From Cyanophora paradoxa CCMP329 (taxonomy: Eukaryota; Plantae; Glaucophyta): a DNA stretch of 64,000 nucleotides. Location: positions 62,001-126,000 of the forward strand of contig QPMI01000439.1 of the NCBI GenBank assembly GCA_004431415.1. Direction: 5' to 3'. Positions 12,208-58,977 of the stretch are shown here, piece by piece. The notes beneath the pieces were generated by a model. It saw only the letters and a program-made list of their open reading frames with translations, was not told the origin of the DNA and did no database searches. Position numbers and translations under genes: made by a program. Positions within the stretch are counted from its first letter, which is position 1; each line of letters opens with the position of its first letter.

Positions 12208-13378
12208 GCTCCTGCCCCGGCCCCGGCCGGAGCCGCACTGGCCGCAGCCATCTCCGTTGTCTCGGGCCCGTCGCCCGCCGTTGCCCTTACGCCCGCGGCC
12301 GCGGCTGCTCCGCCGGCGCGCCCCACGCGGCCGTACCTCCCGCCGAGCCTCCGCGCGCGGCATCCTCCGGCCCGCCCCCGGCCCCGCCCCGCCCCCCACG
12401 CCCCGACAAGCTCCTGAATCCTGACAAGCTTCGACACGGACCTCGGAGCTCGGCGCCGGCCGAGCTCCTGAATATATAATCTCGAGCTCGGACGTCGACC
12501 TCGATCTGATTTCGAAGCTTTTCAAAATAGATGGGCATTTATTAGAATAGATGGGCCAGGAGCACAGCGAGGGCCGGGGGAAAGGGGGCGGGGAAATGCG
12601 GGCCGGATCATCCTTGGCGTGCAAGGACTCAGTTCATGTACAGGCCTCAGGGAGCGGCGGGGGCTCCAGCCTCGAAGGACGTCGACTGCGAGAGTTCGAT
12701 GGATTAATATTTGTCGGAGAACTCGAATCCGGAGGGCCGATCGAGAGAAAGAGCGAACAGGATATCGTGTATATGAGAGGCTGTTAGCAAGGAGGCGGTT
12801 TAAGCGCCCGGAAAGACTTCATGGAATTTGGAGAAAATTGGGAGAATTTGGAGAGAACTTTGGTGATGGGGTGCTAGCGCTCATGACTCAGTGAGGGGCT
12901 ATCAGCCCCTCGAGCTCGCGGGTGATCATGAGGGGCTATGAGCATGAGGGGCTTGAAGCTTAAGGGCCCCGAGAAATTCCGGTTGAGAGGAAATTAGAAA
13001 GCGAGAGTAAATTAAAAAAGCGAGGAGAAAGGAGAATATTAATGTGAGTCGTCGAAGAGCGCGGCGACATTAATTGCAGAGCGCATAAGAAAGAAGCGTG
13101 CATGCGCAGGAGCACCTTCGCGAGTCGGCGGCCCGGGCGCTTTTGCAAATTTCGGCCTGCAGTTGAGAGCGAGCTTTGGAATAATTCGGGAGAGAGCAGT
13201 CGCTTCCGGCGGCTATTGCAGCTCGGCGCTTCGAATTTTCCTGCTCAAACGCGTACGAACGCAGGTGCGCGCATGCGTGCCCAAAGCGTGCGAGCTCGAT
13301 TGCGAGCTTCGGGCACGCGCAGCGGACGCAGCGCTCTTGCACCCGATCGCGAGACGCTTCCGCAATATATAACGTATT

Positions 13379-28249: not shown

Positions 28250-31200
28250 AGCGCGGCGTGCTGAGCATGGCGGCCGCGGGGTCAATGCTAAGGCGCTGCG
28301 CACCGAAGTCGGCAGCGGGGGCCAGGCACGGGGCGCCCTCTTGCAATTGCCTGGCGGCAGCTCCTCCGAAAATGACGGATTCGGAAGGCCGCAGCTGCCG
28401 AGCACCCCCACGTGAGCACGGTCCCTGCGCTACGGTTTCTGCAGCTGAGGGGCGCCCGGGCGCGCACCGTAACGACGCCGATACCGTAGCCGAAAGACGG
28501 AAGACCGAAATGAGCTCTAAGCTGGCAGCGCTTGAGGAGGCGGAAGGGGCGCAGCTCGACCTCCTCCCACTTGGACCCGGACCGCATCTTCGCCTGGTCG
28601 TCCTTGGAAATCGATGTGTTGAAGTGTCTGAGCGTCGCAAGCGTTAAAGCGTCCCAAAGATAAGTCTCTCAAAACGACACTCAAATCGAATATTGATGCG
28701 AACAAACTACGCACTCCTGATCGGCAGAATAGCGGTTCGGCTCGACGAAAACGCCGCTCACGCGCACGTCAACGTCCCCCAGTCTCGATGCCACGCTCAT
28801 CTCGACGGTCGCGCTGTACTCCGTCGGGGGCATGAAGGGGAAGACTCGCTCGGAGGCGGGGACGTCCCACTCGCTCTCCCGGCGCGCGAACTCGCGCTCG
28901 CCCACTTCCACCGTGAAGCACTCCACAAAGTCGCGCGCAAGGCCCTGCCGCGATCGCCATATATGTGAATCAGACCACGAAAGCCTTGTGCCAAAAGCCG
29001 GCGGCAGCCGGCAACATTAATGGCGTGCCTCATACGAGAGCTTCTGAAGTCTTCCCGAGTCGGTGGCCTCCCAGCCTTCCCCTTCCGCGAGCAGCGGCCT
29101 TGCCGCGGCCCCCCCCTCGGGCTCCTCGACCTCGAGCCTCACGACCTCGAGCTTCGCATCGCCCTCACACGAGCCGCGGTTGACGCAGCAGACCGCGACG
29201 CGGTTGGCGCCGTCGAGGGCGAGCACGTCGACGTCCGCCGTGTGCAGCAGCTCGAGGCGGCGCAGCGGGCCAGCCGCGGAGCGCGGCCGCGAGCAGTCCC
29301 ACACCAGCACGGAGCCGTCACGGGCGGCGGAGACGAGCGTGGCGCGGCCCGTGAAGTCCAGGGCCGTGACGGGCTGCGCGTGCCCCGCGAGAACGGCCTT
29401 CCGGTACGCGCCGCCGGCGTCGGCGACGTAGAGGCAGATCTCCTTGCCGCCCGTGCACGCCACGGGCGGCGTGCCGCCGGAGGCGGCAGCGACGCCGACC
29501 GCGACCGCCAGTGAGGAGCCGAAGGGCGGCCGCAGATATTCCAAGCGGCTCTCCTCCGGATCGACCTCCCAGTCCCAGGGGGTGACCTGGCATGGCGCCC
29601 GGGCCGTGAGCACGACTCTAATCACAAAGGTGCGCCTTCTATTATATTATAAAGGTGACTCTTATAAAGGCGGCAGCGTACGGCGAGGCGGTCGAGGGCA
29701 GTGACGGCGGCCGCGCCGAGCTCGGGCCCCAGCGTCGCCAGCAGCTCCGTCCCGTCGTACGCCGCAGATGCGATGAACATGCGGCCCTGCGAGGATGGTC
29801 GGGCGGCCGCGCGACGCGCGCGGGTGGGGGCGGGCGGTGGCATGGTTGCGGGCCTCTGCGGCGCGGGTGGCGAGGCACGCGACGGGTCCCCCGTGGAACC
29901 AGGACGCGCGGCGGCAGACGACGCGGGGAGCGCGGCCCGCGCCAAACTGGAGGACAAAGGCATGAATCCCTCCATCTGCTAAAACGTGAGCGCGCCGTTT
30001 TCGCCGCAGATTGGCGCGTGTGACAGGGGGCGCGCCCTGGAGGCCAAAGTACGCCTCGAAAAGATCTGAAAGAGGTTCGGTCGGCGGAGTGCAAGATAAA
30101 GGGAGGTCTATAGGGCGCCGCGCACTGGCCGAGTCCGCGACGGTGCCGGCCCCAGGTCCGAGAGCAAAGGCGGTGACGGGGCTCGGGATTGGCACGCTCA
30201 GCTCTGCCGCGTCGCCGAGGCGCGGCGCCCCCGCCTCCAGATCCACGCGCACTTCGGCGAGCTTCAACTCCCCGCGGTCGGACACCGTGGCAAAGACGCT
30301 CGTGCCGCCCTTCGTAAGGAGGGCGACTGCGACGTGGCGTGCCCCGCGCAGGATCTTGGGCCCGAGCGTGCTTTTCGCAATGCGAGATGTCGAGTCGGAG
30401 TCAGCCATGACGTCCTCGCGTGTGCTTGCACCGGAAACAGTCTTGTCCCCAAACAGAGACGAGATCGTAGCCTGCGGTACAGATCCGGTGAGCTGCCGAT
30501 CGCGCCTCTTATTGTATTATAAAGGCGCCTCTAATCTAAGTATTCTAGGGAGCCTTCGGGCGCACCTTTGCGTTGGCGGGCCCGTCTCCGCAGCGGAGGC
30601 ACGAAACCACACCGTCGTCGCGGAGGCTGGCGACGAGGACCGCGCCGCCCGGGCTCGCGATCGGCAGCGGCGCGACGCCGACGCCGGCGGCGGGCGGGCC
30701 GCCCTGCAGCCTGTCGTCGCCGCCCGCCAGGTCGCTGGGATCGATGGCGTCGAGGTCCCACACGCGGACGTGCTCGCGATCGTACGTGACGAGGCGCCGC
30801 CCGCCCTCCTCCATCGCCATGTCCTTGATCGGGTGCGCGTGGCCTTTCAGCTCGCCCACAAGGCGGGCGCACTTTGGCGTGTGCGCCCTGAGCCAGTCGC
30901 GCGTCGAGTCGGTCATGGGCCTGCCCATGACAGGGTCCGTCTCGGGATCGAACGGCGCTCCCGGGTCGCACTCGTCGAACTCGCACAGGCGCACGATCTC
31001 CTGGCTCTGCAGGTGCACGACCGCCACGCGCACCAGGCCCGGCCGGCCCTCGACCTCCTGGATAGCGAAGCGCCAGGACTCGTCGTCCGCTCCGATGCCG
31101 ATCAGGCACAGCAAGCGCGGCCGCGGGGCGTTGGCCACAATGCAGATGACGCAGCGGTCTCCGATAACTTTTCTGTTGAGAAGTGACTCGCAGTGCTTTG

Positions 31201-34200
31201 AAACGACTCGAACGTTCCCATTGGCGAATTCCGCGAGCGTCGTCCTGCGCACAGGGGTGGGGACTTGAACAGGCTGCATCGCAATCTGATCATCGGATGC
31301 TCGCGAGCGCGCGGGCGCACGTGAACTCGATGCCATCGTACTCCCGGTCGACCCCGCTCTGGAGGACTCTGACGGAGAAGGGCGGGTTAGTACTCCGTCT
31401 AAATATGTGCATGAAGGCGCTCACTCTTCATTGTCGACAGTGCAGTAGAAATTCATGTAGACACCACGGCCTAGCACGTCCGTATACCTGTTCACGGTCA
31501 GCAACCATGACCATGAGCAACAACGCATATATAGAGCACAATAGTACGCACCCAAAGCCAGAACGTCCATGACCGCACAACTGCATGAACGCACGATACT
31601 GCGGTAATTGGTGGCTCTGCACAAAAGAACGAGGGTGTGAGCGATACAAGCGCATCTGTAAATATATATTTGTGATGGTGAGCTTCTGCAGCAACTGCGA
31701 AAACGCACGCGGAGAATACGCAGAGGCGTCTGGGTGTGGACATCATAGATCACTATTTCGTCGCGTTTCCCCTGCGCGCTGAAGTGAGCAAGCAGGAAAG
31801 GATGAACACAGTTGCCAGGCTGCAGTGCCCTATTTAGCGAAAAGTAAATCTTCTAGGCTATCTATCCTGAAAGCACACCGATGCCAGCTTGCTGCTATCG
31901 GAGCTCCAGCACAGCGCCTGGAATGGTTCGTTGGGCCTGTCGCGATCGAGCCGCACGCACGCACGTGACAACCATGTGAATAAACGTGCACATGTAGCCA
32001 AATCAAACGCACCCGTACTCGAAATCCCCTTCCTCGCGATCGGGCATGGTTTCGGCGCTTAGGCGCCCCCACAGCTTGCCTTGCTCAAGCGTCAGCAGCA
32101 CGACTCCATGGTTCGGGAGCTGGCGCACGCTCGCGATAAGCGGTCATCAAACGGATCAAGCACTCTAGATTTGCATGCAGCTGATCGCTACGCACCTCGT
32201 TGGTGCTGACGGCTCCAGTTTTCCGTCGTTCGAGATGCGGAGGCACGCGTGCACCGTGTTTGAGGAGTACATACTCAGCTTAACGTTCGCCTTCCAGCGC
32301 TCTTGTCCGTTGAAGTCGAAGCACACAACTTCCTCCGTGTCTTTGCTGCGACCGCGCTCACGAATGAGGCTTGTAACCATGCATCTCGATATCGGGCTCT
32401 TAATGTTTATGAATATCCGTATGGCTTTCAAATCTGGGCAGGATCGGGGACTCCAACGGACCATTTAATAACGATGTACTGTTGCTTCCACACGCCGAGG
32501 CTACAGGTTTCAGGTTGCAAATCCCAGTTGAATTTCTTGTCCTGCAGGCCGCCGGGCGATCGCAAATGAGAGATGTAGATCTAGAATTAAAACATCCTAT
32601 AAACCTTACAACTCGCAAGGATATAGCAGGCTATTGCGAGGGTGCCGGCACGCACAGGCAGAAGGGCACGCAATATGATCATGATACAAGGCTCGTGACT
32701 CTGCGGGGCTCGTCAGGCATATTTGACGGATGCAGCTGAACAACATTTGATTTAAATTTGGGAAGGCAGCGGTTGCCGACCAGGGGCTTGTTCATGCAGC
32801 GCAGCCACGTCGCGCGCGAGCTGCGGAGCGCCTCTGCCGCGCGCGTCGCCAGCTCGAACTTGTCCGACTCGTTCGCGGCTCGCTGCTGCAAGCTGGCTAA
32901 AGCCGGCGCAGGATTGCTTTGCATGAATTCGGCATGGCGCCCGATGAAGCCCTTGATCTGCCGCGATCGCGATGTCATTCCAGCGAAGTCTTAATTATAA
33001 GCAGCTATGGCGTGAAATTAAAAATTAGAGCGTGAGATTCAAAGATCCTGAACCTCAAAAAAGCCCTCGCGGAGGTCGCGTGCAGCGTCCTCCTGCATGA
33101 TTTCATCGAGGAGCGTGAAGAGCGCCGGCAGGCCGTCGCTCCGTGCGCACGCGAAGAGGAATTCGAGGGATCCATCCCTGCACGTGGCGTGACGGGCAGC
33201 GGGTGCAGCATGCGCAGCTGGAGCTGGAGCTGGCGGGATCTGAGATTATAATTACCGGAGGATGTCGAGAAGCTTCGCGTACTGGCCGGACGCAGCCAAA
33301 TGCGCCGGCTGCACGCGATGTTTGAGACAGAATTCGAACGTATCTTGCACACAATTATTTGATGTGCACTGCACCTGCATGCGTATGCGCCGCACGTTTG
33401 GCGTGTCTCCCAGCATGAGTGGCTGCGCGAGCCGGGCTCAGAGGGACATACGAAGAAGCTTAAGCTTAAGCTTGGCCATGGGCGTCGGGGCGTGCAGGCC
33501 TGCGGGGCGAGCCGTCGGTCCTCGAGCATGGCCCCGTCCCTCGATATCGATGCGCCCTTAAGCTTCTCCATCGACGTCGACGTCGGCGGCCGATGCATAT
33601 GGTGCCGCCGCTTCCCCGCCGCGAACTCGTTGCCGAAGTAGCACGCGAGCAGCTCGTGCATGGCGCGGCGCCTGTCGGGGTCCGCGTCGACGTACCGCCG
33701 CGTGGCGGCCTCCGCGAACTGCCGGTGGTACCTGCACCCCTCGAGTCGGCATGGCGCGGAAGCGGCTACGTTTAACGGGGCGCAACGCACCAGCCGATCA
33801 CTGCCGCGTTGCTGGCGCCGCCGGAGCCGCGCTCGGCGAGGAGACCGCCCAGGTCCGACCGGATGCGGAGGATGAGCGACGGCGGCACGCGCCGCACCGG
33901 CGGCGTCCACCACTGCCCGGATACAAGTCAAGGGAGGTGTATGCAGGCGTACGCGTGCGCGCACGGCGCGCGCGCACCACAAAGAGCTGGTCGAGCGTCG
34001 CGTCGTCGCAGCTGAGCACGTCTGCGAGCTCCGCCTCCGACAGGCCGCCCTTGGCGACCGTGACGAAGCCCAGCATAGCCCGCACCAGCGCCTCCCCGTA
34101 CTTCGTCTGCGCACCAGGACAAGGCGATCAGGCGAAGCACGAATCAAAGCGCGAAGCATGAAATTTGAAGAGGAATCACGAGCGTGCCTCAAGACGCTTG

Positions 34201-37200
34201 AACATCGCCTCGACCAGCGTGGGGACGTCTTTGGCCTGCAGCGCAATTGATATCCCATAATTATAAAAGAAGCTGCTGCAGCAATCAAAGACGACCGAGG
34301 GCCGCACCTCGATCTTAGCGGCGTCGCCTTCGACGAAGCTGCGCCAGCGGCGGGCCTGCTCCCAGCACAGGCGGAGGAAGAGGGGCGTGCGATCGGGTCC
34401 CGCGTCGAAGGCCGCCAGCACCGCCTCCCGCTGCGCAGGCACGAGCGACCTGCCCGCCTCCTGGCACCTGCAGCGAGATCGATGGTCGAAGTCGACGTCG
34501 TCCCTTGCAATTGAGAGCGACATCTACAAGAAATTATATTAAAGCCAGAGCGAGCTCGAGCCGCACCAGACGCCGAGGACGCTCTCTGCCATGCTGCGGT
34601 CGAACGCCGGTGCCTCTACCGTCGCGTTTTCGACGTGGTCGTTGAAGCGCTCGAGCACGCCGCCGCCGGCCTCGCCGACGAGGATCGAGACGAGGCAGCG
34701 GCAGTGCGCGGGCAGCGCGGGCGGGAGCCACTGCAATAGCCGCCCGAGCTCGTCGGAGAGCTGCCGAAGTCGACGTGTAAGGGGCGCGGGCGGGCGGCGC
34801 TGGCGCCAGGGCGGGCTAATATATTTATATAAATTATATAAGACCTGGTCCAGGGCGTCCAGGATCAGGTAGATCGGCTGCTCCCGGGTTCCCCACTCGA
34901 GGCACCGCAGGAAAACCGCCGCGACGGTCCGGAAGTCCGCGTCGGGCGGCAGCTCGGGCGCCGGCCGGCCCAGCGCCGCGGCGAGCTGCCGGGCGAGCGA
35001 GACGAGCAGGCTCCGAGTGTCCCCCGAGTGCAGCGTCGTGCCGAGGAAACGCCCAAGCACGACCGGCTGCGCACCGCCGCCGTCGCCGCGGCCGTCGCCT
35101 GAGCTCACCCTCCGCCAGACGGCACCCATGATGGACGACTTGCCGCAGCCGCTCGCGCCGACGAGCGCGAGGGGCCGCCCCTCGCCCTCGGAGGCCCCCT
35201 CCAGGTACCGAGCGAGCTCGGAGACGACCGCCTCCTGCCCCAGGCACGCCTCCGCGCACTGCCACGCCGTCTGCAGGTGCTGCGCCGCCTCCGCCTCCAG
35301 CGGGTCCGCCGCCGCGCCGCCGGTGCCGGCACCGGCGCCGGCGCCGGCAGCTCTGCCCGTCGCGGCGGCGACGATGCCCGCGCCGACCATGCGGCACACC
35401 GCGTCGCTGAAGGCGTGCACGTGCTCGTCCGACAGCGGTTTGCTGAACTTGGTCGCGAGGGTGACGGGCGGGGCGTGCTTCGAGACCCGCCCCAGCAGAT
35501 CCTGCGGGCGCGAGCAGCTCTGAGCTGAAATTTCCAAGTCCGCCGGGGCGGAGACGGCAGGCTTGCAACTGGGCGCACGCGCAGCATTGCCTGCGCTTCC
35601 GCGTCCACTGGGGCCCTGGAAGTCGATCCCGCGGCCACGGCGACGGCCGCGGCGGGCCGCGCGCCAGTGCCGTGCGCGATGGGCGTCGGGGCGTTCTCGA
35701 GGTCGATGAAGCGCCGCACCACCTGCGGGGAGCCTCATGATCAGTCCCCGAACGGCCTTGAGATTCCTTGCGCGCGCCAGGCGCGCGCGCCGCATCGTCG
35801 AATGCGCCGTTCCTCGCGACTTCCTCGATGTCGTCGATGCGTCGCCTGCCGCAGTCCAAAAACGAGCGTCAGGCCGCGCAAGGAACGCTATCTCGCAGCG
35901 GCCTTAGATCTAGGGACGCACCGGACGAAGAGGAACGTGCCCTCGTAGCGGCCCTCCAGCTCCTGCAAACCCCTCTCGATCTCCATCTCCGTCACGCTGC
36001 AGCGCCCCAGGCCTCATGATTAGTTTCGGCGGGTGCAGCCCTGCGCGGCAGGTCTAGAATGGTGCCCGGACACGGGACCCGCCTGATTGTGTACTTGCGC
36101 CGCGCCTCCTCCGGCAGACCGCTGGAGGCCCTGCGCAGCAGGCCCGCAAGCCGCGTCGAGATCTCCGTCCACGCGGCGTCCGCCTGCAAATTATAAAATT
36201 AAACGATGGCGTCGTTCGTGAGCGGCGGCCAGCTGCAGCTGCATCGTGGCGCCGCGGGGCGGGGGGAGGGGGGGGGGGGGGAAGGGGAAGGGGGGGGGGA
36301 AGGGAGCGGGGGAAGGGGGGTAGAGGGGGGCCCGGGCGCGCCTGCTTCCGCCTCGCGGGGTCGTCGGAGCGCTTGTCGGGCAAGTTCGCCGAGATGCGAA
36401 GGAGCACGTACTCGCCCCCGGGCCGCGCGTTCTCGTCCAGCTTGTACCTGACGAGAAGCCGTGATCGTATGAGGAGGCCGGTTCGCGCAGGAAGGCCGGG
36501 GCCCCGAATTCGAAAGGGCAACGGACCACTGGCGGAGGAGCGCGATCTCTTCCTTCCCCGCGCCCGCCTCCTCCGAGCTCCGCTCAAGCGCCTCGAACTC
36601 GCCCCGCGGGATGCGCGAGGGCAGCGGCCGGAAACTGCGCGCAGGCGCGCGCGCGCGGCCCCGTCACGTCACGTCAGCCCGGCCCCTCGCGAACGCGAGG
36701 GGGCCGAGCTCCGAGGCTCGAGGCTCGAGGGGGCCGCTGGCGCTTACCCGTACTTGTCGCCTCCGAGGAGGACGAAGGCGGGCCCGGCCGACTCGGCGGC
36801 GCAGCGCGCGACTTCCAGCAAGCAGATGTCCACCACGTCGTGCTCTGCGCACGCGCGCGCGGCCGCCCTTAGCCCGCCCTCCGGCCGACCGCACATTTAA
36901 AGCGCGCACCGTCAACAGCGTCGTCGGAGACACCCCAGCGCCTGCCAGGCCCCACACGTCTCAGAGCCGGCGAGAGCCCCGAGGGCCGCGGCGCGAGCGT
37001 CCGGCGCTGCCCGGCCGGAGGCGCACATATCGACGGCTTGCCAGGTGAGGCCGACACGGCGGGCGAGGCTGCGGGGCGCCCCATACATATGTCAGCACCC
37101 GGCCCGCGCGCGGCGCGGCGCCGGCGTCAGGCGGGCCTCAGCCCGGCCGCGGGAGGGAGGGGCGGGCCTGTCGAGGAAGGGGAAGACGTCCTCGAGGAGA

Positions 37201-38448
37201 TCGTTCCTCTCCCTCTCCATGTCTGCGGGAGTCGTTGGGTGGGTGGGGGGCAAAGGAGGGGGGGTGAAGAAAGGCCGGGGGGGGGGGGGGGTTCCATATG
37301 AAGTGAGTCAAAGAGGGGGGAGAAAGGGGGAAGGGGCGCAAAGAGGGGGGAGAAAGGCGGGGGGAGAAAGGCGGGGGGGGGGGGGGGCGGGGTTCCATAG
37401 GGGGTGACTCAAGGGGAGAGGGAGGGGGCCGGGGGGGCTAGAGTAGTGGGGGGACGAAGAGGGAGGGGGGGGGGCTAGAGTAGTGGGGGGACGATAGGGG
37501 GTAACTCAAGGGGAAAGGGGGAAGGGGGAGGCTTCATAGGGGTGAGTGAAGATAAGAGAGGGGGGGGGGGGAGGGGCGAGGCGGGGAGGTGGGGGGAGGG
37601 GAGAGGGGGAGGGGGGGAGGGGTGGGCCACCGCTGAACTGCGCGGCCGGTCAAAGACAGAAGATCGCGGTTGCGAGAGGAGCGAGGGACGCCCGCGCACG
37701 GTCGAAGAGAAGAAGACGCGGACCGCGCGGCGGGCGGCGGTCGGCCGGGACCCCGCGAGGCGGCCGCGCAGGGCGCGCCGGCGCGCCCCGCCGTCGTCGT
37801 CCGGCGCCTGCGCCTGCCCCGCGACCGGTGCCCTCTCGCGCGCGGCCTTCTCTGCAGCTTCCAGCATCTCTCTGAACTCGGGCCTCTCCTCCCGCCGCGG
37901 GCGCGGCTTCTTCTCCTGCTGCTGTTGCTTGGGGCCGCCCGCAACCGCTGCTGCGGCTGCCGCGGCGCGCGCGCCGTGGCTGGCTCAGTAAGGCGACCGC
38001 CGCCGAGCGCGAGCGCGCACGTACGAATGGGGTGGGCGGCGTCTGCCGCCGCGCCGGGTTTAGAGGAACTCGTGGGGGCCGGCGCCACGGCCGGCCCTGG
38101 TACTGGCCTTGGTGCGCCGGGGCGCGCAGCTGGTTGATATGAGGTGCCCTGCGCCACAGAACGTTAGCTATAGCCTTTAATGGCATGATCAGCTGCAGCG
38201 TGCTGCATGCGCAGCTGCAGCTGGAGCCGCTGGTGCCGCGGCCGCCGGCCGCGGGCGAGCAAATTAAAAGATCTAGAGGCTTGATCGAGCTCGGAGCTCG
38301 CGGATTGCAATTGGCAGCTGCAGCTGCGCATAAGAACGCGCGCGCGCACCTCGGCTGCAGGATCCAGATTCACAATGACCTCTCGCACGGCCACGTTAGC
38401 CTGCAATTGCGAGTTGCGCTGGCGAGACGTAGACTGGCAGCAACCCAT
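28250..38448 (-). CDS. DUF4062-NACHT-WD40 STAND protein (NWD1/NWD2-like) with N-terminal MGCC lipidation motif; 3' end approximate
   Basis: RVFFSST|FS|DMERERNDLLEDVFPFL, VDM|RWGV, DICLLEVARC..S.GPAFVLLGGDKYG, SVTEMEI; Walker A LVGASGCGKSS; RFLGTT; Walker B LILDALDQ; TPLFLRL; GGLSEAELADVLSCDD; WLRCMNKP; WD repeats LKGHAHPIKD..VRVWD and LAGHAQPVTALDF..LVSAARDGSVLVWD. Confidence 0.85.
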
Positions 38449-44500: not shown

Positions 44501-47500
44501 GGCCTCGCCGCCGGCGCCGACGTCACGTCCCACCTCCACGGCGCGTTGAATTTAGTAAAAACGGCTCTATTATGAAGCCTTAAGACCTTTCTTCCCTTCT
44601 AGATGTACTAGACCAATAGAGCTCTTCGGCCCTTTATTAATCCTGAACTTTGCTGCGGGCTGCAGGGATCTGCAAGAAGGCGGTGGAGACCCTGCGCGAC
44701 CGGGGGTGCGTGCGCGCGGACGACGACGGCTTCGGCCTCACCACGACGCCCCTCGGCTCGACCATGTCCCGCTTCTACACCCGCCTGGCCACCATCGAGG
44801 CCCGCCCCCGCTCCGCTCTGCTCCGCCTCGCCGCTCCTCGCGACTGATTATCGATCAGGCCTTCTCCGCGGCGCCGCCGGGGGCCGACATGCGGACGTGC
44901 CTCCAGACGCTCTGCTCGGCGGCCGAGTTCGGGGACTGGAAGCCCCGCCAGGAGGACAAGGCGGCGCTGAACGAGCTCAACGCGCGCCTCCCGCCCGCGT
45001 TCGCGCTCAAGGGCAAGTTCAAGGAGCCGCGGGACAAGGCCTACGCGCTCCTCCTGGTGCGGGGGCCGGCCCTCCCGCTTTCTAAGCCTAGTCTTAGCCT
45101 AGTCTGCTAGTCCTCCCGGTCGGTTTTCGTTTGACGCCGGCGGGCCGGGCAGGCGGAGCTCTTTGGCGAGGAGATCCGCGAGTGGGGCCTGCGGAGCGAC
45201 GCCGGCAGCATCCGCACCGCCGCGCTGCGCGTCGCGCGCTGCATGGTCGAGGCGCGCGCGCCGCTCGGACCTCCTGTTTACCCGCCCGCCAGCCCGCCCG
45301 CCCCTTTCTTGACCGCTTCCTCCTTTTCCCAGGTCTTCCAGGTCCTCGAGAAGGGCCTCGCCTGCGCGAATGCCGTCGTACTGTGCGCCCGCCCCGCCCT
45401 TTAGCGCCGCAGATTCGATCGTGGCGCAGCGGGGCGTGCCTGGAGCGGCGGCTGTGGCAGAACTCGGAGCGCGGGCTGGCGCAGCTCGGGCGGCTCCCGC
45501 CGGGCGCCGGCCCCGCGGAGCTCAAGCTCGCCGGCTTCGCGAGCGTACGGGAGCTTCGCGAGGCCGCCGCCGCCGCCGCGGCGGAGGGGCCCGAGGCCCT
45601 CGAGGTCCTCGCCCAGCGCCTCAAGGTCGACGCGGCCCTCGCCGGGCGCGTCTTGGCGGCCCTCCCGCCCATGCCCGCCGTCCACGCCTGGGAGGGGGTA
45701 CGCGAATCTGCTCTCCACTCCAAAGGCCGCGCCCCCTCCGCCCCCTCCGACTCCGACGCCGCGCAGCACGTGGGGGACGCGCCGGTGCTGGAGATCCACC
45801 TGGAGGGGGGGCTCGATTGCGGCGGCCCGCACGCGGGGCGCCCGGCCCACTCCCTCCGCCTCCTCGTCTGCGACAAGGCCGGCGGCCTGCTCTACGCCAC
45901 GCGCTTCCCGTGCGAACTTCGCTGAAACTTCGCTGAAATTTCGATGAAACTTCTGAAGTCTAAAGCGCGTCGCGGCGCAGCTCCTCGTCGCTGGCGGGAG
46001 AGCAGACGCGGCGCGTGCCCCTCGCGGACAGGACCCTCCCTACCCCCGAGCTCTTCGTCGTGCTCGTGTCGGAGGATTACGGTACCCCTCCCCAGATCGC
46101 CCCCCCCCGGCCTCCCGTACCCCCTTCGCGAACCGCCCCCGCAGTCGACGTGGATGACCTGAAGTCGGTCTTGGTGCCATCCGCCCGCATCGCCGGACCC
46201 GCTTCCTCAGGCCCTGCGGAAGCCTCTGCGGCCGCCGCGCCGGCCGCCGCCGCGCCCAAAAAGAAGAAAGCGGCGTCCAAGCGGGCGGCGCCGACCCCGG
46301 CGGAGCCTTCGGCCCCCGGCCCCGCTCCGGCTTCCGCCCCTGTACCCGCACCCTCTTCCGCTCCCGCCCCCGCCCCTGTCCCGCAGCCGCAGCGCTTCTC
46401 CGCACCACACCCGCCGCGCTCATCCGCCGCGCACCCGCCGCGCCCCTCCGCCCCGCACCCGCCTCCGGTCGAGCATGCGCAGCAGCCGGCGCGGGCTTCT
46501 GCTTCCTTCAGCGCGCCGCGGCCGGCGCAGCCGCCGGCGCCGCAGCCGCCGCAGGAACCCATCGACGTTGACCTGACGGACGTCGGGGCGGATGGTGCGC
46601 CCGTCGCTTTTCAACTGGACCCGCCCAGCACTTGACGCGTTCGTGCGCCGCGCAGCCGCCGAGGGCGCGGGAGAAGTCGACCCGTGGGAGGGCGGCTGGG
46701 ACGCGGACTTCGACCCGCCGTCGGCAGGCGCCGACGGCGCCAGCGCCGCCACTGCTTCGCATTACTTCTCCGCTGCGCCGCCGGCGCCGCCGCCGCCGCC
46801 GCCGCCTGCCGCCTCTGCTCCGGCGGCCCCCGCCCCGAGCTCCTCCTCCTTCGCCCCTGCGCCGGCGCCGGCGCCGGCGCCCGCCGCGCCGCGCCCCCGG
46901 GCCTCCGCTCCGAAGACGGGCGGCGCCGGACAGGCCAGCGGCGTCGCGCCGGCGTCTACGTCGACGTCCGCCGGCAAGGCTGGCAAGGTGGCGGCGGCGC
47001 CGGCTGCGGCGGCGCGGGGCCCGATGGACGCGTTCGTGAAGCCCGTCACGACCGACGAGCTGGCGGCAGCCGCCGGCGAGCGTGCGCCGCTGCCCCGGGC
47101 CCGGCCAGCCGCAGCGCCGCCTGACGCGCGTCCCTCGCCAGAAGAGCGCCGCTGGGCGGAGAAGGAGCGGGCGGACCGCGAGCGCGCCCAGCAGGAGGCC
47201 GCCGCCCGCGCTGCCGCTGCTGCCGCCGCGGCTCCGCCGCAGCCGGCCCCCTGGCGCGCCCGCGCCGCGCCCGGCGGGCGTTGGACCGCCGTCGCCGGCC
47301 CCGCTGGCCGCGGTGGGGCCCCGCCGCCGCTTCGAGTCTCGCCGCCTCGACGTCCGCCGGCCCCGGCCCCTTCGGGCCCGACTGGGACGCCTACCGGTTT
47401 TCCAGGGCGGCGGCGGCGCCGCCGCCCGCGTCGTACCCCGCCGCTGCTGCGCCCGCGGCTCTGGCGCCGGCGTGGACGCCGGGGCCGGCGCCGGCGTGGA

Positions 47501-50164
47501 CGCCGGGGCCGGCGCCGGCGGGCGCCGGGGAGCCACCCGCTCCGGACTCCCTGCTCAGCCCCTTCTCCGAGGAGGATGAGGAGGGGGCGGGGCGCGGGGA
47601 GCAGGGGAGGGCGGCGCCGCAGCCGCGGGGCGCGGGCGGCGGCCGCTCGCAGCCCATCCGCACCGGAGACGCCGAGATTCTGTCCTTCGAGAACGGCGCG
47701 AACGCGTCAGATGACGACGAGGAGGGGGGTACGCAGGAGCTCGAGCCGGAGGGGCGCCCGGCCCCCGCCCCCTCCGCCGTCGAGATGTGCGCGCCCGTAC
47801 CCCGCAGCGTTTCTGCTCGTGTACCCCCCAAGCCTGCGGCTGACTTCGACGCCTTCGCGCAGGGCGCAGGCGAGCCTGGCGGAGATGCTGCCTGCCTTTC
47901 GGGCTCAGAATGGCTCCGGCGCGCGCCTCACGGCGGCGTTCGGTCCGGGCGCGGCGCACACGCCGCGCGGGCCGCCGCCGCCGCCGCCGGCCGCGGGCCC
48001 TTTCGGCGAAGCGGCCGACCACGTCCAGCATGGCGGGTGGGACTTCGGCGTCGGCTCCGAGCGGCCCCGCCCGCCGCCCCCGCCGCCCCTGGAGACGCCC
48101 GCCTTCGAATTTGAAGCGTCCCACGCTCAGCCGGCCCTGCGGCAGGGCGCCCCGGTCCCAGCGCCCTGGGCGCGGCAGCGGTCCCCTCCGGCAGCCCCGC
48201 GGCCGCAGGCTCAGCAGCAGCATCCCTTCGGCCTCTCCCCTCGGCGCTCTCAGCGCGACTTCGTCCCATCTCCGTCGCGCTCGGGATCGCGGCAGGGCTT
48301 CGCTCCGGGTGCCGGGGCTTACGGTGCCGGCGCCGGCCCCGCGCCCCGCCCCGGCTCGGTCTTCATCGTCGGGGCCTCGGGTACCGTCGAGCTCTGCGGC
48401 TCGGAGGTCCCCTCGCCGCACGGGTACCCCTCCTACCACGCTTCGCCGTACCCCGCCGCGGCCGCCGCCTCCTCCTCTCTGGCCGCGTACCCCGCGCGGA
48501 CCCCGTCGCGCCGCACCCCGCTCCAGACGGGAGCGAGTCCCGCTGAGCTCGCGGCGGCGGCTGAGGCGGAGGCGCGCGGTCACCGGCCGATGCCGCTGCC
48601 TTCCGGCCCCCGCACTCCCTTCCGCCCCGGGCCCGCGGCCCCCTCGCCTCTCTCCCCGCTCTACGAGGGTCCCAGCCCGCGCGGCGGACGCCGCCCAGCC
48701 CCGGCCGGGCCCGACCCCCTCGCTGCTGCGCTGGGCGGCGGAGCGCCGCGCCGCAGCTCACTCCCCGGGGCTTCCGCCGGCCCGTCCGCCTCTGAGCAGG
48801 TACCCCCCCTCTCTCTGCATCCGCCTCCGCCGCGCCTCGCCTCACGCCGCGCGCGCGCGAAGGCCCGCAGCCTCTTCCCGGCGCGCCGGCCGTCTTTGGA
48901 CCCCACTCCACCGGCTCGGGCGCCCGGGCCCGGGCCCGGCCCCGCGACGCCGGCAGGGGCCAAGGCTGCGAGGGCGGCGCCGTGGCGATCCCACTCGTTT
49001 CTGTCGCACTACCCGCCCGCCGCGCCCTCCGCCGCCGCCGCCGCGCGCCCCGCGCCCAGTCCGGAGGCTTCTCGGGCCCTCCTGCGGGCCGCCCTCGGCG
49101 GGCACGGGCACACAGCGGGCCCCGCTCCGCCCCCGGCCGCCCCGCTCCCGCCCGGCTCGCCAGGTACAGGCATCGCCGACGATCTCTGGGGTACGCCTCC
49201 GGGTGCGTCGACGTCTACCCCCCTCCCCCCGTCCCTTCTTCCCCCCTGTTCTGTCCTGACGCCGCCCGGCCTTAGAAGGCGTAGCGCCCCGCGTCCGCCC
49301 CTCCATCGGCTTCCCCGCCCCTGCCCCGAAAATGGAAGTCGAGGAGGAGACGCCGCCGCCGGCCGCCCCGGCCGCCCCGGTACCCCCGGAGAGGCCGGCC
49401 GGCGTGGCGCCTCCGTCTTCTTCGACCTCCGCTCTTCTCGGCGGCAGTTCGATAGAGCTCGAGGTGCATTCAGCTGTGCTGCTTCCGCGGCCTTCGGCAC
49501 CTTTCTCACGATCCGCCGGCCGTTCGCAGCTGCTGCGCGGCGCGGGCCTCGCCTCTGCCGCCCGCTCGCGGGAGCCGGCGCCCTCTGCGGCCCGCATCTT
49601 CGCCAAGCGGCCCGCCGAGGAGGCCCCGGGGGAGATGGGCGCAGCAGCCCCCGCCAAGGCGGCCCGCCCCGCGGCGGACGACGCCGCCTCCGCCCCGACA
49701 CAGCTCGAGGCCGAGCCCGAAGCCGTCACTCCGGAGGGCCCCTCGACTGGCGGCTTAATTCTGGGCGACTGGCCATGGCCGGCGGCCGCGGCGGCGCTGC
49801 ACGTGCCACAGGGGCCCCCTCTCGAGCGAACCCCGCCGTGCGCCTTCCTTCCTCCCCCTCGCGCCAGCCAGCAACGCCGGACCACTCACTCACGCGGGGC
49901 GGGGGTCTGCGCAGGGCGCCGGCGGCGCGGCGGGGCAACTCGGCACGCAAGATCGATTTCGGGGATGAGCCGGCCTTGCCGGCCACGGGCCCGGGCCCGG
50001 CCCCAGCGCCCCAGGCGCCTCCGCCGCCGAAGCTGCAGTCGGCGCCGCCTCCCGAGGCGCCGGCGAGGCTGGAGGGTGGGGAGGAGGCCTGGGGGGAGAA
50101 CTGGATGTGGGACGACGAGGAGGAGGGGGCCGACCCCGCAACCGCCGTCGACCTCCGCACGTAG
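41549..50164 (+). CDS. MER3: Meiotic Ski2-like DExH helicase MER3/HFM1 with a Sec63-like region and a very long Pro/Ala-rich C-terminal tail
   Basis: FPYRTFNRVQT, S|APTGAGKTVIFEMAI, YIAPMKALCEER..DW, TTPEK|WDSVTRKW, VDEIH, RGATLE, GISAT, YRPVRL, FLFERTLN, VFCST.KGA, GVAFHHA, STSTLALGVNFPARLVI, QMCGRAGRPQYD, LEEHLNAEV. Single helicase cassette. Confidence 0.9.
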
Positions 50165-50810: not shown

Positions 50811-53800
50811 ATGGACGCGGCAGAACCCGCGGACATCGATCCAGCTGCGGTGTCAGCTGTCCACGGGTCTACAGCGAGCGCCGGCCCCGCGGCCGGCGCT
50901 GGCCATGGGAAGCGCAGGGAGCGCCCGGAGTCGGGCGGAGAATCCTCGGATCCAGAGGACAAGCGTACGCGGAACCTGCCCGAGCACGATCATGAGTCCC
51001 GTGCGTAACGCACTGCGGCTCTAGATCTTCAGCCGTCGTCCCTGATCGCGCCCCTCATCAGATTCCAGCGCTAGCGCAACCCCTCGACCTGATCATGATA
51101 ATGCGCCAGCTCGAACGTTGACAGGGGCCGCCCCCGCCGCGGAAGCGGCTACGAGAGCTCCTGCAGGATGCGGCCGAGCGATCCGCATCTTCGTCTCTTC
51201 GACATTCCGTGCGCGCTTTCTTAACCCGTCCCCCCTTCCGAAGTTCTTCCCTCTCTCTTCCCCCCCCCCCTCCGCCGGCCCCCCCCCCCCCCCCCTCCGG
51301 CCCTCCGGATCCGCAACACCCCGGCCCCCCTTCCTCCCTTCCGACTCCCTTCCGACCCCTTCCCCTTTCCCCTCCGCCCCCACCCCGCCCTCCCCCCTTC
51401 CCGTCGGTCCCCTCCCCCCCCCCCCCCCCTTCCTAGTCCTCTCCCTGTGCACCCACTTCCTTCTTTTCGGCGCCTCCGCTTCCCTTAAAGCTTTCTGCTT
51501 TTTACTCTCTCTTCCGCATCCCCCGGCGTTGACGCTCAGCCCCGCCTGCTGCGTCCGCCTTGACCCCTCTTCTTCTTGAGTGCTTCCTTTCGTCTCTGCG
51601 TCCCAGCCTCTTCCGGCCTCCGCCCCCCCCCCCCCCCCCCCCCCCCCGCTCCCACCCCCTCCCCCGCCGCTCCCCGCCCTCCTACGTCCCAGCTCCTCCC
51701 TCCGTTCGCCCGATTCTCAGCGGGGCCCCCTTTGCCCCCCGCGCCTCTTTGCGCCCCCGCGTCTATCTTCCCTCCCATGCCAGCCGCCCGGCATCCCGGT
51801 TTCCCCCGGTTTCCATCATACCACCTCCCCCCAACCTCCCCCTTCCCCCTCCACCTCCCCCTCCCCCATGGCCACCCCACCCGTTTCCCCGGGTCCCTTT
51901 TTTTTCGGGCTCTTGTCTGGCCCTTGGCTCACCCTTCGTGCTCCGCAGAGGACATGATGGCGGAGCGCGACGCGATCCGCTCGGCCGTGTACCCCCGCCT
52001 CCGCGCCCTCTGCGCCGAGCGCGGCCTCTTCCTCCACATCGTCGACCTCCGCTGGGGCATCAGCGACGACGAAGTCAAGCGGAGCGAGGTCTGACCCTCG
52101 CATTCATGTTATTATATATATTGCTGAAGCCATCTACGATTCGCAGGTCATCCGCCTCTGCCTCCGGGGGGTACAGCGGTGCCAGTACTTCGTCGGAATT
52201 CTGAAGAGTGCGTACACTCCCCTGCTGAAGGTGTTTGTATAATTTTAATTATATATAATCTGCTCGCACTCTGCGCAGGTCGCTATGGGTGGCACGCGAA
52301 ACCCTCCGCCGGCGCTCCAACAGATGACGAGAGCAGCATCGCTTTTCGCGAGTTCGTGTGGTTGTAGATGCCTGAATCCTGCGACTGTATGGAATTTATT
52401 CTTGCGGTGCAGAAATCTGCAGAAGGCTGCAAAGGAGTTTCCATGGGTGGACGAGTGGGCCGATCGATCCATTACAGAAATCGGTGCGTCTATCATTGTC
52501 CTGCAGCCGTTCCTCCAGCCGCTGATCACGAGGAAATCTGCACGTGCACACGTCCTAGAAATTCGAGCCGGCTGCCTTCGTAATCCAGAGGTGAATCATG
52601 ATCATAGGTTTTGAGTGATTAAAATCTGCTTGACTGAATATTATCTGTCCTAATTATAAACGCAGGCACATCGCGGGAAAGCTATCTTCTTTTGCGCCGA
52701 AGAAGCGATTCGCGACGGGGAGGAGAGCCCATACGCTGCGCGAAGGATGGAGGAGCTAAAGGGCGAGATCCGCCGCTCAGGCCTCCCCGTGCAGCCGTAC
52801 AGCGGCCCGCAGCAGCTGGCGACGGCCTTGCGCGATGAACTTGTGCAGGCGAGAATGATTTTCTGTCCATACTCCGCCCTTACTTTTACGCTGACCTGTA
52901 TACAATTCTGGACAGATGGTAGAGCGAGACTACCCAGCAGGACAAGAGCGAACGTGGCTGCAGAAAGAACGGGCGGCGCAAGATGCGTTTGCGGTCCTTC
53001 GGCGACGGGTGTACGTTGGCTATCCAAAGGATGCCGATGCGCTCAGCGATTACGTCACTGGCAAAAAGAAAACTTTTCTCGCAATCTACGGCGAGGGAGG
53101 CTCGGGCAAGAGCTGTGCGCATCTGAGGACTTAGCTATATATAGCTATAGCTATTGATAAATATATAGCATCTGATCCCAACCTGCACGCAGCGCTGCTC
53201 GCCACTTGGAGCCAGCAATGGGCTCAAGACCACCCGAACGACCTGGTAATTGCGCACTTCATTGGAGGCTCCCAGAGCAGCTCCACTCTCCCCTCCATTG
53301 CGCGGTTTGTTCACGCCCTCGAATATCATTTGTTCTTCTTGCTCAGAGAAAGCTGTGCAGGCGCATCGGAGAAGAAGTGAGGGAGCGCTGGCCTGATGTG
53401 GAGAAGCTGGATTGGAGCGGAAACGAGGCGGAAGTGGCCGAAAAGCTGCGGGCGTGGCTCGCATTGAAATCGCAGCGATGGCCGGGGCGAGTTGTCCTTG
53501 TGCTCGATGGCATCGATCAGCTGCGCGGCCCGGCAGTCGCCCAGCAACTCGAGTGGCTGCCAGAACGCTCGGCCCCACGGCTCCGCATCATTCTATCGTG
53601 CATCCCGGGTTTACGGATTTCGCCGGTCTCTGACTGGTGCCGTAAAATGGAGTGGGCAAGGGCGAGAGGGGAGGCTGGCCCATATAGATACGGGTCAAGC
53701 TCACCGATGGCTCCACGACTGAACACCCGCAAGGTATTCGGGCTGCAGTTAGCGATGCGGCGCGATGTAGTGCAGCGAGTACTTCAGGAGCAAGGCAGAA

Positions 53801-56800
53801 ATCTAAGCAAGGGGCGCGTCGACGAAATTGTCGAGTCGAGAGGCTGCGCCAATCCGTGCGTCACGGCGTCTTTTGCATGCATCGATAACATTGTCACAGT
53901 GTGCATGGTTATCAACTTTGTATTTCTCGCAGGCTCTTCCTCCGCACGTTGTTGGAGGAACTGTCTGTGGTGGCTGTGGATGAAACTCTCGACGCTGACA
54001 TCCAAAAGTACCTCAAGTGCAGCGGCCCGCGGGATCTCTTCCGCGCCATCCTTGGGCGCGTCTACAACCAGCACAAGGGTGCCGGCGGCGGCGCGAGCGT
54101 GGAGGGCTTCGCGGCGGAGGCGGCGCGCGCGATCCTGCTGTCGCGTCACGGGATGGCGGAGAGCGAGCTTGTCGAACTTCTGCGGGTGGGAAAGAACGAT
54201 GGGCCTGCAGAAGTTCGCGAAATGCGTTTGTTGTCTGGGAGCTCGAGCTTGCTGTGACAGTCGCCTGGCATGCGCAGGTTGCGTGGGAGCTTTTCTGGTA
54301 CGATTTCTTGCCACTACTGGTTGATCGAGGTGCTAACACTTTGTGCGACTTTCTTTGCTTACCTACGTGAACTTTTTTTGCCGCCAGATGGCTTGTTTGG
54401 ATTCTTCCACCGCTGTGCCGCCGAAGTGCCACATGTTCCATCGCTATTAAGATTTCATGTGCTTACGTCAGACTGCAGGCAGCCGAGCTTGAATCAGGGT
54501 TGTCCAGTGAAGCTGAGTCTGGCGGCCTCACCGCTCTTGAATCGAACCGAAGGCGAGTGCATGAGCTGCTTGGTGTATTCTTCGCCGCTCAGCCCGCGTC
54601 GAGACGAAGGGCGGAAGAGGGCCCGTGGGCGCTCGCCCAAGCCGGGCCCGCTGCCAGCGAGCGGCTGGCGGATCTGCTTTGCGACAAGGACGTGCTAAAG
54701 CATCTCAATGACTTCGAGATGACGGAGCTCTGGGTTCGGAGCGGCCTTTCGCACGAGGCGGCAGCCCGCTACGCCCAAATGCCAGCTGCAGTGGATCCAT
54801 CGTATTTGTGTCGTGTTGGGCAGGTTTTGCACCAAATGGGACGGTCCGCGGATGGGATACCGCTCCTCCAGGTGATCATGATCATGAGTGCCAAGAACTG
54901 TTGTGTTGTCACGAGAAGCCTTGCAATTGATTTCTGATCAACAGTGCTGTCCCTATGCGCAGCACGCCCTTTCAATTATCACGAGACATCGGCCATTTGT
55001 GCATCCGAATCACCCAAGCGCGGCATCAGTGCTTCACGATCTGGCGCGTTTTCATCAAGCGCAAGGAGAGTACAATAATGCCCAGTCCCTGTACGAGGTG
55101 CGCTGTCCAGGATATTGAGTGCGGCCTCTTAAAGTTTCCATATCAGTGTTAATTTAACGTGCAGCAAGCACTCGAAATGAAACGAACTTCGGCCGCGTTC
55201 GGCCCAAAGCACTCAAGCACAGCCGAAACGCTGCTCGGGCTTGCGTCGCTGCTCCAAGTTCGGAGCGACTACGGGAAGGCGCTTTCCCTTTCTGAGGTAT
55301 ACGTAAATACAATGTGCGTCTCTGAAGGACTCTGAAGGCAATCTTATAACGGCGCAGCAAGCTCTTTCAATCTTCGAGACAGTTGTCGGCGCGGAGGACC
55401 CAAAGACAGCAAAGGCGCTGCACGTGCTGGCTTCAATTCATGAGGCGCGAGGCGATTATGATGCAGCGCTTCCGATGTTTGAGGTGAGCGTCTTAAATTT
55501 TGTGTATATGTGGAGCTCTCGAACGAGTACTATTTAATTTATTGCGTACATTTGCAGCGGGCGTTCAAAATCAACGAGAAGGTTCTCGGTCCAGATCACC
55601 CTAACACGGCGGCGGCTTTGCACGAACTGGCTTCGCTGTTCGTGGAGAAAGGAATGTACATTGAGGCGCTGCCGCTCTATGAGGTGCGCTGCCGCTCCAC
55701 CGGTAGAAAGAGCGCTTTCGCCCCAGAGCGTGACGAGATATGGATAGAAATAAAATTAACTTGAAACTCGCGCGCTTTGAAATTGATGAACTGACGGGTT
55801 TGTTTTCAGCGGGCGCTTTCAATCAGTAGATTGACGTTGGGCGCAATGCATCCGGGAACCGCTGCAACAATGCAGGAACTTGCCCGTTTGAACCACGAGT
55901 TGAAGAACTACTATGCGGCTGTTCAGCTATACGAGGTTTGCGGAAGCTTTCGCTTTCGAATTCGAACTAGTACTGTCATATAATCGATGGCTAGAGCTTT
56001 CAAAACATTTGAATCTGCACGCAGAAAGCTCTGAGTGTCCGCATGAAGTTCGAGGGTCCAGAGCATCCAAATATTGCCGTACTGTACCATCAACAGGGGC
56101 TGCTGTATGAGACCTTTCAAAAATATGAGTTGGCGGAGGCTCTTTATCGGGTAAACCGTGACATCGACATGCTCTGAACACATGCTTTGCGAACGTGAAC
56201 CGCTCGTCGCAGAGAGCTCTTTCCATCAAAGAGAAGGCGCTTGGCTCTGAGCACCCAAGCACAGCAGCGACTCTCCATCAGTTGGCCTCGATTCACAGCA
56301 CGCGGAGAGAAACTCAGGAGGCGCTCGCTCTGTACAAGGTCTGACTTCTGACACCCGCAATGCATATTATCTGAAAGCGTGTTTTCCAGAAAGCTCTCGC
56401 GATCGAGGAGAAATCGCTCGGCCCAAAACATCCTAACACGGCTGCGACACTGCACGAGATCGCACGGCTGTATCAAGGACAGTGCGAATATCGAGCGGCG
56501 CTCCCCCTGTTTGAGGTAATTATGTTGAATCCAAATTTGAATGTGTTGTTCTCCGCTCACTCTATGAGGTGACATGGCACTATGCACAGCGGGCGCTTGC
56601 GATAAACGAAGAAGTCCTTGGATTCGATCATCCGAATACCGCAGCGACGCTGTTCCAGCTCGCTTCGCTACATGACAGGCGGGGCGACAGTCTCAGAGCC
56701 AAACCTCTGCGCGAGGTCCGCGTTCACTCTCATAGTCGAGTTTATAACTCGAGTTTACTTACTTTAGTCCGCGTCTCATTATTAAATTGCACCATGCGAT

Positions 56801-58977
56801 TGACTCAATGCGCAATTGACGTGCGTGTGGCAGCGAGCTCTTGCGATCGACGCGAGGCTCCAAGCGATGGTTCGACACGCTAATTTGCACGATATGAATC
56901 CGCCTCCGCTGCATGTTCCTGCTTCCAGCGTACCATTCTGCGTGTACGAGATTGCGAAAGATGACCGACCCAATCGCGAGGTGCTTTCACTGCTTCTTAG
57001 CGTCAATATCGAATCGAGGGCAATTATTCAAGATGCACATCACTCGTACGCGCAGTGGGTCCTCTGCATACGGGAGAAGCCGGTCGCGAAGCGATCTGCA
57101 GCCTGTTGTGCAGGTCCCGGCAGGCTTTCAATTGCAAGTGCTCAAGGAACTCACATTCGCCGCCCGGAAACGCGTATACGAGAGGTGGCTGCCGCACTGC
57201 AACAGCGCGATGACGACAGGCTCGATACGCTGCTGGCCAAGTTCAAAGTGCGCGCACGCGATGGCCCCCATTTGGTTTTTTGCTTAAGCTCACAATCGCC
57301 CCATACCCGTCGTCGACGTCGGCAGATGGGCGACAGGAAGAGAGGAGAAGAGCTGCACGAGCTCGCCGGGCAGCTTGGCAGGAGCGTTCCTCACAGCTGG
57401 GTAGTGCAAGTATACGAGGTGCGATACCTGGACAAATCGAAACCTGGATTCGTTACGATCCTCCTGTATAGGAGGCCCTGCAAAGCAAGACGGAAACCCT
57501 CGGAGGCGACCATCCGAGCACGGCGGCAACGCTTCACGAGCTTGGGCGAGTGCACCAGGAGGAGGGCAACTATCGGAAAGCGCTCGAGCTTTACGATGTA
57601 CGCGAGTCCCGCATCGATATCCTGACACGAGATTCCTAGCTGACTTGCGTGCAGAAAGCGCTAGGGATTAGAGAGAAAGCGGAGGGTCTGGAGCATTCCG
57701 AAACGGCGGGAACTTTGTTCTCTGCGGCATCGCTCCACCAAGCTTGGCGCGAGGTGCGTGTAGCTGTAGACTTTTAAAGTACATTATTGCGGAAATCACG
57801 TGTACAAGCAGGCGATCGCGGTTGCTGTTTGTCAAAGCCTGCGGGGGCAAGTGTCCTGCGTCTTGGCATTTAGCAATTGTCGATTCGAATTCGATGACGA
57901 TTCGGAAAGAGGATTCGATTTGGCAAGTGTCTTGAGTCGTCTCGACAACATCGATACGGGACTCCCCGTTTACGTCGACAATTTCAGGCTGGCACTGCGT
58001 GTGTTCGAGGTGCGCCAAACCTTAAGGCTCTGCTGTTCCGAAAGCTGGGTTGAATCGCTCTGCACATTAATGCAGCAAGCGCGCTCGATATTCGAGGAGA
58101 TCGTCGGGCCAGAGCACCCGAGCACGGCGTCCGCGCTCCACGAGCTCGGCCGCCTCCACATGGAGCAAGGCGACCTTTACGCCGCCCGTCTTTTCCTCGA
58201 GGTGCCGCACGGTCTATAGATTAATATTTCTGCGCACGCGGGCGCCGCGGCTGTGCCGTTTTCGAGTTCATGATAACGCGTACGCTGCAGCTGATTACAA
58301 TTCGCAGAGGGCGCTCGCGATTCGGAGGCGGGTGCTGGGAGATCAGGACGCGCTGGTGGCGCAGACGGCGGCGTCGCTCGCGGAGCTCCTAACGGCGGCC
58401 GGCGAGCGCGAGGCCGTCGACGCCCTCGTCCAGGCGCTTTATATGCTCGTCGATGTTTGATTTATCTATCTAATTTCGATGCCAGGAGGCGCTGCTGCCG
58501 GCGACGTGGAATCAGGAGCGCTCCGCCGCCGCCACCGCCGCCGGGACTGTTTCTGCACCCGACACGGCTACAAAGCTAGACGCGTTCGGGCGGGTGGAGG
58601 TCGCCTGTGGGCGGCCCTGCGAGGCCCGCGCGCGATTCGAGGTCCGCACATCGCTCCCGTCTCCTGTCATACATACGTAGCGCCGCTCGATCACAATGTT
58701 GGGGGATGACTCGTGTTAGATATCTTGAAGCTGAAGCTTAAGTAAGCTTAAGTAAGAACCTCTTAAGTACTGATCATTATGTCTCATTCATGCCTCAGTC
58801 ACCGAGCCTCAATTTACTAATTATAAGCTAGCCTCAATCACGTGTACGTGCCGGTCACCACGTCATGCGCATGCGCAGGTTGCGCTGGCGCTGCGGCGGG
58901 CGTGGCTCGGGGACGAGCACCCCCTGGCGAAGGAGACGGCTGCGGCCCTCGAGCTCGCCTCCCTACCCCCTGCTTGA
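50811..58977 (+). CDS. DUF4062-NACHT-TPR STAND protein (NPHP3/TTC41-like architecture) with about 16 TPRs, mostly one per exon
   Basis: IRIFVSSTF|QDMMAERD..VYPRLRALC..VDLRWGI; RYGW; RSITEI|EI; Walker A IYGEGGSGKS; AHFIG; Walker B VVLVLDGIDQL; LEWLP; NP|LFLRTLLEEL; SRHGMAESEL; 42-aa TPRs such as RAFKINEKVLGPDHPNTAAALHELASL. Stop TGA at 58977. Confidence 0.9.

Follow-up and report, generated by a model that had tools for sequence, protein, structure and literature searches.

The window analyzed here, a stretch of 64,000 nucleotides (nt) from contig QPMI01000439.1 of the Cyanophora paradoxa CCMP329 genome, carries on its forward strand (positions 50811 to 58977) a gene that probably encodes an old, fixed, and partly degenerated receptor of the NIR-NACHT-TPR type, i.e., a STAND switch acting through NAD+ cleavage by its NIR domain. 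The gene is apparently intact as judged from its sequence, with a frame that is open throughout, unbroken Walker A and Walker B motifs, and a glutamate equivalent to E1008 of TEP1. A preliminary description of the locus had proposed an NLR-like layout of a STAND NTPase followed by a TPR sensor. That layout holds, the NTPase being a NACHT, and an N-terminal DUF4062/NIR domain which had been missed can be added to it.

In the model, the exons between 50811 and 54871 join as one open frame that enters the repeat array in phase 0, giving a product of about 1,630 amino acids (aa) with the domain order DUF4062/NIR-NACHT-helical-TPR. The core is laid out as follows:

50811-51000, plus strand: probable first exon, with the ATG and a low-complexity N terminus (placed by an open frame that joins the next exon).
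51125-51208, plus strand: exon ending in the first DUF4062 strand, with the FVSSTF motif as in the paralogues and TEP1.
51949-52848, plus strand: DUF4062/NIR (TIR-like NADase) domain, six exons, with the TE-x-E motif across exons 52413-52483 and 52559-52590.
52916-53855, plus strand: NACHT NTPase exons, Walker A at the end of 52916-53114 and Walker B in 53361-53855.
53933-54871, plus strand: helical/winged-helix region, four exons with a phase-0 end (NPHP3_hel, E 0.06).

Pfam and structure searches were run exon by exon or on paralogues, and the joined spliced model was used only in local comparison with fetched proteins. DUF4062 was assigned by alignment of the model to paralogues that pass PF13271, and a profile of the DUF4062 domains of the Cyanophora family matched the NIR domain of human TEP1 (PDB 11gz) with an E value of 2e-37. 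Both glutamates of TE-x-E are present and aligned with the TEP1 motif, and the chain numbering is compatible with E1008 being the first of the two. NACHT matches were weak for single exons of the window gene; the paralogues exceed the NACHT cutoff. No NB-ARC match was obtained in the Pfam searches of exons and paralogues, which returned NACHT/AAA_16 with DUF4062 instead. An NB-ARC identity was rejected, the core being of the TEP1/NWD/TTC41/NPHP3 type. The largest NACHT exon is 100% matched by the EukProt C. paradoxa protein tig00020675_g12613, and since this is a 157-aa fragment, the public annotation (contig tig00020675) splits the gene. A poly-C-rich intron of 740 nt (51209-51948, plus strand) separates the first DUF4062 strand from the remainder; it far exceeds nearly all other introns of the gene (50 to 130 nt), and similar proline-coding read-throughs corrupt the annotated paralogues P0001 and P0011.

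The TPR sensor is encoded by the exons listed below, where the phases of the degenerate exons are those predicted by a frame-keeping model:

54963-55097, plus strand: TPR exon 1, 45 aa, 135 nt (exon model, per-exon search).
55165-55296, plus strand: TPR exon 2, 44 aa, 132 nt (best match, the 44-aa second unit of paralogue P0045).
55358-56715, plus strand: seven consecutive 126-nt phase-0 TPR exons, starting at 55358, 55558, 55810, 56025, 56213, 56390, and 56590.
56834-57418, plus strand: interrupted unit in open frame, comprising a TPR start, about 150 non-TPR residues, and a TPR end.
57472-57597, plus strand: 126-nt TPR exon (length, frame, Pfam).
57655-58009, plus strand: truncated 33-aa unit (57655-57753, 99 nt) and degenerate 66-aa exon of 198 nt (57812-58009), the splicing of the second part being uncertain.
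58076-58433, plus strand: two 126-nt TPR exons, 58076-58201 and 58308-58433, the latter with a GC donor.
58486-58641, plus strand: degenerate 52-aa TPR exon, with weak in-register matches to paralogue units and a coding-like score.
58879-58977, plus strand: last exon, with a capping helix and the stop codon (exon model).

Ten exons of exactly 126 nt, plus one of 135 and one of 132 nt, had been described as phase 0 and cut in one register, and coordinates, frames, and splice dinucleotides bear this out. All 10 are exactly 126 nt long, open in frame 0, and flanked by AG before and GT after (GC after 58433); they and the 135- and 132-nt exons each correspond to one kinesin-light-chain-type TPR in a single cut register. 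Every modelled intron from 54872 onward is in phase 0, versus 5 of 14 in the modelled core. Because AG and GT occur around the array at frequencies of only 0.064 and 0.049, it is far beyond chance that ten full-length repeats should each match a boundary exactly at both ends. Chance or artifact was rejected as the source of the array. In Pfam searches each exon tested matched TPR_12, and most also TPR_10; the one exon searched against solved structures (55558-55683) had kinesin light chains and a Podospora NLR-type TPR protein as its best matches. The units of the window gene share a mean amino acid identity of 40%, i.e., low internal conservation, with scaffold positions at an entropy of 0.96 bits versus about 2.0 elsewhere. 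A groove row at TPR positions 5 and 6 is also shared among the ten exons (His in 7/10, Glu or Gln in 8/10).

The regularity is confined to these exons. Nine regular units precede the first irregular stretch, and the array is not a clean series of 12 units, as 56834-57418, 57655-58009, and 58486-58641 are degenerate or interrupted; the continuity implied by the preliminary description was thus not borne out. The stretch 56834-57418 can be read as one exon of 585 nt or as three exons with in-frame introns of 75 and 78 nt. Its insert had no match in Pfam, Atlas, the fetched proteins and paralogues, or the window, and a single-sequence structure model gave no confident fold (pLDDT, a per-residue confidence score, 40); it is possibly an integrated domain or an exonized intron. 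The irregular units raise the question of whether the gene is a decaying or truncated member of its family, with nine real units at the start, followed after 56715 by a part that is degenerating or is not expressed in the modelled form. The three irregular units with their intermediate coding scores, the GC donor, the long terminal branch of the gene in the core tree (0.53; see below), and the annotation split at the core would all fit such decay. Yet the model contains no stop or frameshift, the 585-nt stretch is open in frame at a p of about 0.0006 in shuffles, it is followed by three canonical TPR exons, and the catalytic motifs are intact, so that we regard this explanation as quite unlikely.

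The preliminary description had further inferred from the array a combinatorial binding surface and a candidate diversifiable receptor, taken here as one actively diversified by the skipping of TPR exons in RNA or their shuffling in DNA. By construction, phase 0 does allow any unit to be skipped or duplicated in frame, and the uniform phase and register of all units would suit such a device, as would the range of 1 to 14 detected units per annotated family protein. There is precedent in the NB-ARC-TPR genes of Ectocarpus (PMC3341825), whose exon-per-repeat design is alike, as had been pointed out, and in the alternative splicing of brown-algal ROCO genes (PMC11378527). The window locus itself speaks against it: its exons are not near-identical, its introns are not homologous, no clear orphan exon lies in an intron, and the groove is not hypervariable. 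The ten 126-nt exons are only 35 to 60% identical in pairwise DNA comparisons, and their fourfold sites are identical at 31% versus a chance expectation of 28%, i.e., synonymous sites are saturated. Introns show no likeness beyond that of shuffled sequences, the best pair scoring 24, at the 95th percentile of shuffles. No long repeats were found at the locus, a six-frame profile scan of the 64-kb window revealed neither inverted nor orphan TPR units, nor any TPR exon containing a stop; the truncated unit of 99 nt could be regarded as an inactivated exon, as could the degenerate ones, should RNA show that they are skipped. Against other paralogues, the best cross-gene match of any unit is 40 to 64%. 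Nor does this locus show exons that were recently duplicated in place or exchanged between genes. The 44-aa unit 2 found its top match among all paralogues in the 44-aa second unit of P0045 (21/44), and because the rank is the same and the 44-residue spacing is rare in the Cyanophora family, this suggests that the first units of the array have kept their order.

The claim that scaffold residues are conserved was confirmed, but variability does not cluster on the binding face. With the groove defined by established TPR numbering as positions 2, 5, 6, 9, 12, and 13, its entropy is 1.93 bits versus 2.06 at outer positions (p=0.83), i.e., there is no concave excess. Because of the synonymous saturation, a ratio of nonsynonymous to synonymous substitutions (dN/dS) between exons is meaningless. 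Overall, active diversification of the window gene appears unlikely; the copy has the look of an old, settled array, not of one under active reshuffling.

The window gene is one member of a Cyanophora family that numbers at least 27 genes. Its top other matches are Cyanophora paralogues with DUF4062, NACHT, and TPR_12, which are 38 to 43% identical to it over at least 1,000 residues. A tree of 72 core sequences places all 27 Cyanophora rows together with a support of 100, separate from the 45 other proteins, and the window gene groups with P0045, P0002, and P0009 on a long branch (terminal length, 0.53). The gene models P0005 and P0038 (tig00021037_g17428 and g17429) are adjacent and have nearly identical cores, pointing to a very recent duplication in the family. 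Outside Cyanophora, the nearest matches share this architecture and come from metagenomes or bacteria; the ones looked up each consist of a single open frame, and some adjoin caspase, kinase, TIR, SLATT, or toxin-antitoxin genes. At L001:334-9561, for instance, an intronless DUF4062-NACHT-TPR gene lies 3′ of phosphatase, kinase, and caspase genes in a defense-like neighborhood. PADLOC returned no Avs model match for the two paralogues tested. The core tree has no eukaryotic outgroup and contains no NPHP3 or TTC41 sequence, for which reason bacterial gene transfer is a lead only.

A different function has to be weighed at this point, that of a nonimmune STAND scaffold like NPHP3 or TTC41, e.g., in ciliary or trafficking processes, whose groove would bind a fixed endogenous partner. 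NPHP3 is a single-copy protein with an N-terminal myristoylated Gly2 and a coiled coil. Weak Pfam matches to NPHP3 models in the correct order are compatible with such a scaffold, and kinesin-light-chain-type repeats with a conserved His/Glu-Gln groove row would suit a fixed ligand. The family is however a large lineage-specific expansion rather than a single-copy orthologue, the modelled N terminus of the window gene lacks a Gly2 myristoylation site, and the nearest outside matches are single-frame metagenomic genes, some of them beside caspase, TIR, SLATT, or toxin-antitoxin genes. We consider a scaffold role very unlikely. Clear orthology to NPHP3, a prospect raised in the preliminary description, left no sign and is unsupported, the paralogues falling below the cutoffs of the NPHP3-specific models PF25022 and PF24884 and numbering at least 27. 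Among the best 120 matches, no protein was named TTC41.

Repeat turnover is instead seen outside the window, in a young Cyanophora subclade (P0008, P0040 to P0044, and P0015) which is known here from proteins alone and has 4 to 12 similar TPR units in the annotated proteins. The cores of P0040 to P0043 are 77 to 88% identical to that of P0008. Units of the same rank are no closer to each other than units of other rank, i.e., positional orthology is missing, and nearest-neighbor units lie in the same gene in 20 of 42 cases versus 7 expected. Groove entropy is 2.45 versus 1.28 (p=0.006, with columns that are not independent). At the protein level the subclade thus shows repeat turnover, gene-specific homogenization, and a hypervariable groove, which speaks for a diversified receptor. 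The intronless relatives P0060 and P0077 have a groove excess like that of the young subclade, however, so that exon cassettes are not needed for it, which also tells against their role in diversifying the window gene.

The exon design has a close counterpart in the Ectocarpus NB-ARC-TPR genes (Zambounis et al., PMC3341825), likewise a multigene family with a STAND NTPase, C-terminal TPRs, and one 126-nt phase-0 exon per 42-aa repeat. The Cyanophora NTPase is, in contrast, a NACHT of the TEP1/NPHP3 type preceded by DUF4062/NIR, and its host is a glaucophyte, not a brown alga. The hallmarks of the Ectocarpus system are inactivated intronic exons, recent local duplications, an exon order that paralogues no longer share, and positive selection (PMC3341825), whereas the window locus has no clear inactivated intronic exons, recent local duplications, or selection signal. 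DUF4062 (NIR) has been shown in two preprints to be a TIR-like NADase in bacterial defense, including in a STAND-TPR protein, and in TEP1 (bioRxiv 10.64898/2026.05.01.722283; 10.64898/2026.09.04.749371). As in TEP1, NWD1, NWD2, TTC41, NPHP3, and PsAvs2-NIR, DUF4062 stands in the Cyanophora gene beside NACHT and a helical domain, with the position of the catalytic Glu kept; PsAvs2 shares the TPR sensor as well. Compared with these NIR proteins, Cyanophora has a family expansion, an exon-per-repeat sensor, no TROVE, vWA, or WD40 domain, and an activity that is predicted. The fungal TPR NLRs with high internal conservation (Dyrka et al., PMC4986451) have a kinesin-light-chain-like TPR sensor, as in Cyanophora, and the young subclade resembles them in combining similar repeats with a concave face that varies, unlike the window copy with its low internal conservation and lack of concave excess. 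The metagenomic intronless DUF4062-NACHT-TPR proteins P0028, P0060, P0062, and P0077 have the same domain order and cores about 33 to 37% identical to that of P0008; they are single open reading frames without exon cassettes, across a long branch from Cyanophora. Both the 126-nt TPR exon design, from Ectocarpus, and the NIR-NACHT-TPR architecture are already known. Our literature search found no paper on these genes or on NLR-like receptors in Cyanophora, and NIR domains have been reported to be rare in Archaeplastida (9%).

We thus favor an old NIR-NACHT-TPR receptor, in which the sensor would have arisen long ago, when a single 126-nt TPR exon with phase-0 introns was duplicated in tandem. 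Amplification of a single phase-0 exon explains the common register without selection for shuffling. The units of the window copy would later have diverged, become fixed, and partly degenerated. The phase-0 design eases the gain and loss of repeats over evolutionary time, but this locus does not appear to be making use of it at present. The likely action can be drawn by analogy with PsAvs2-NIR, TEP1, and STAND proteins in general: the TPR groove would bind a ligand, which is probably a protein of viral or other foreign origin, upon which the NACHT would exchange nucleotide and oligomerize, and the clustered NIR domains would cleave NAD+, leading to growth arrest or an ADP-ribose signal. We infer the expression, splicing, ligand, NADase activity, and immune role of the window gene. 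Several observations weigh against this interpretation: the gene is split in the annotation; its degenerate C-terminal part could mean decay; synonymous saturation weakens the test of groove variability and would hide old positive selection; and human NWD1, NWD2, and NPHP3 had no NADase activity in the tests of the two preprints (bioRxiv 10.64898/2026.05.01.722283; 10.64898/2026.09.04.749371).

The window also carries other genes. A second DUF4062-type NACHT gene with an apparent WD40 tail (NWD/TEP1-like) lies on the minus strand at about 28500-37800, its P-loop stretch at 35109-35234 matching AAA_16 with an E value of 4e-6. An unrelated gene, whose degenerate TPR-like exons are repeated internally, is present as two paralogues in tandem at about 7100-12400 and 13500-16500 on the plus strand; two segments of 126 nt each (13872-13997 and 15885-16010) had no Pfam match. 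The neighbor upstream of the NIR-NACHT-TPR gene (about 44600-50164, plus strand) has a long low-complexity tail and matches the Sec63/Brl domain (E 8e-7); it is probably a MER3/HFM1-type helicase.

For the family as a whole, a wider scenario is possible, if doubtful: Cyanophora may have acquired a bacterial-type NIR-NACHT-TPR defense gene, whose repeat then gained a phase-0 intron independently of the brown algae, and expanded it into an NADase-armed receptor family in which young members still diversify by exon-unit duplication and groove mutation, and maybe by exon skipping, the window gene being an older member with an integrated non-TPR sensor domain. Shuffling would best be tested on the young subclade, with the window gene as an old, static control. 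The Cyanophora NIR-NACHT-TPR family, in a cultured glaucophyte, thus offers a place to test whether exon-per-repeat arrays serve diversification or simply result from tandem duplication.

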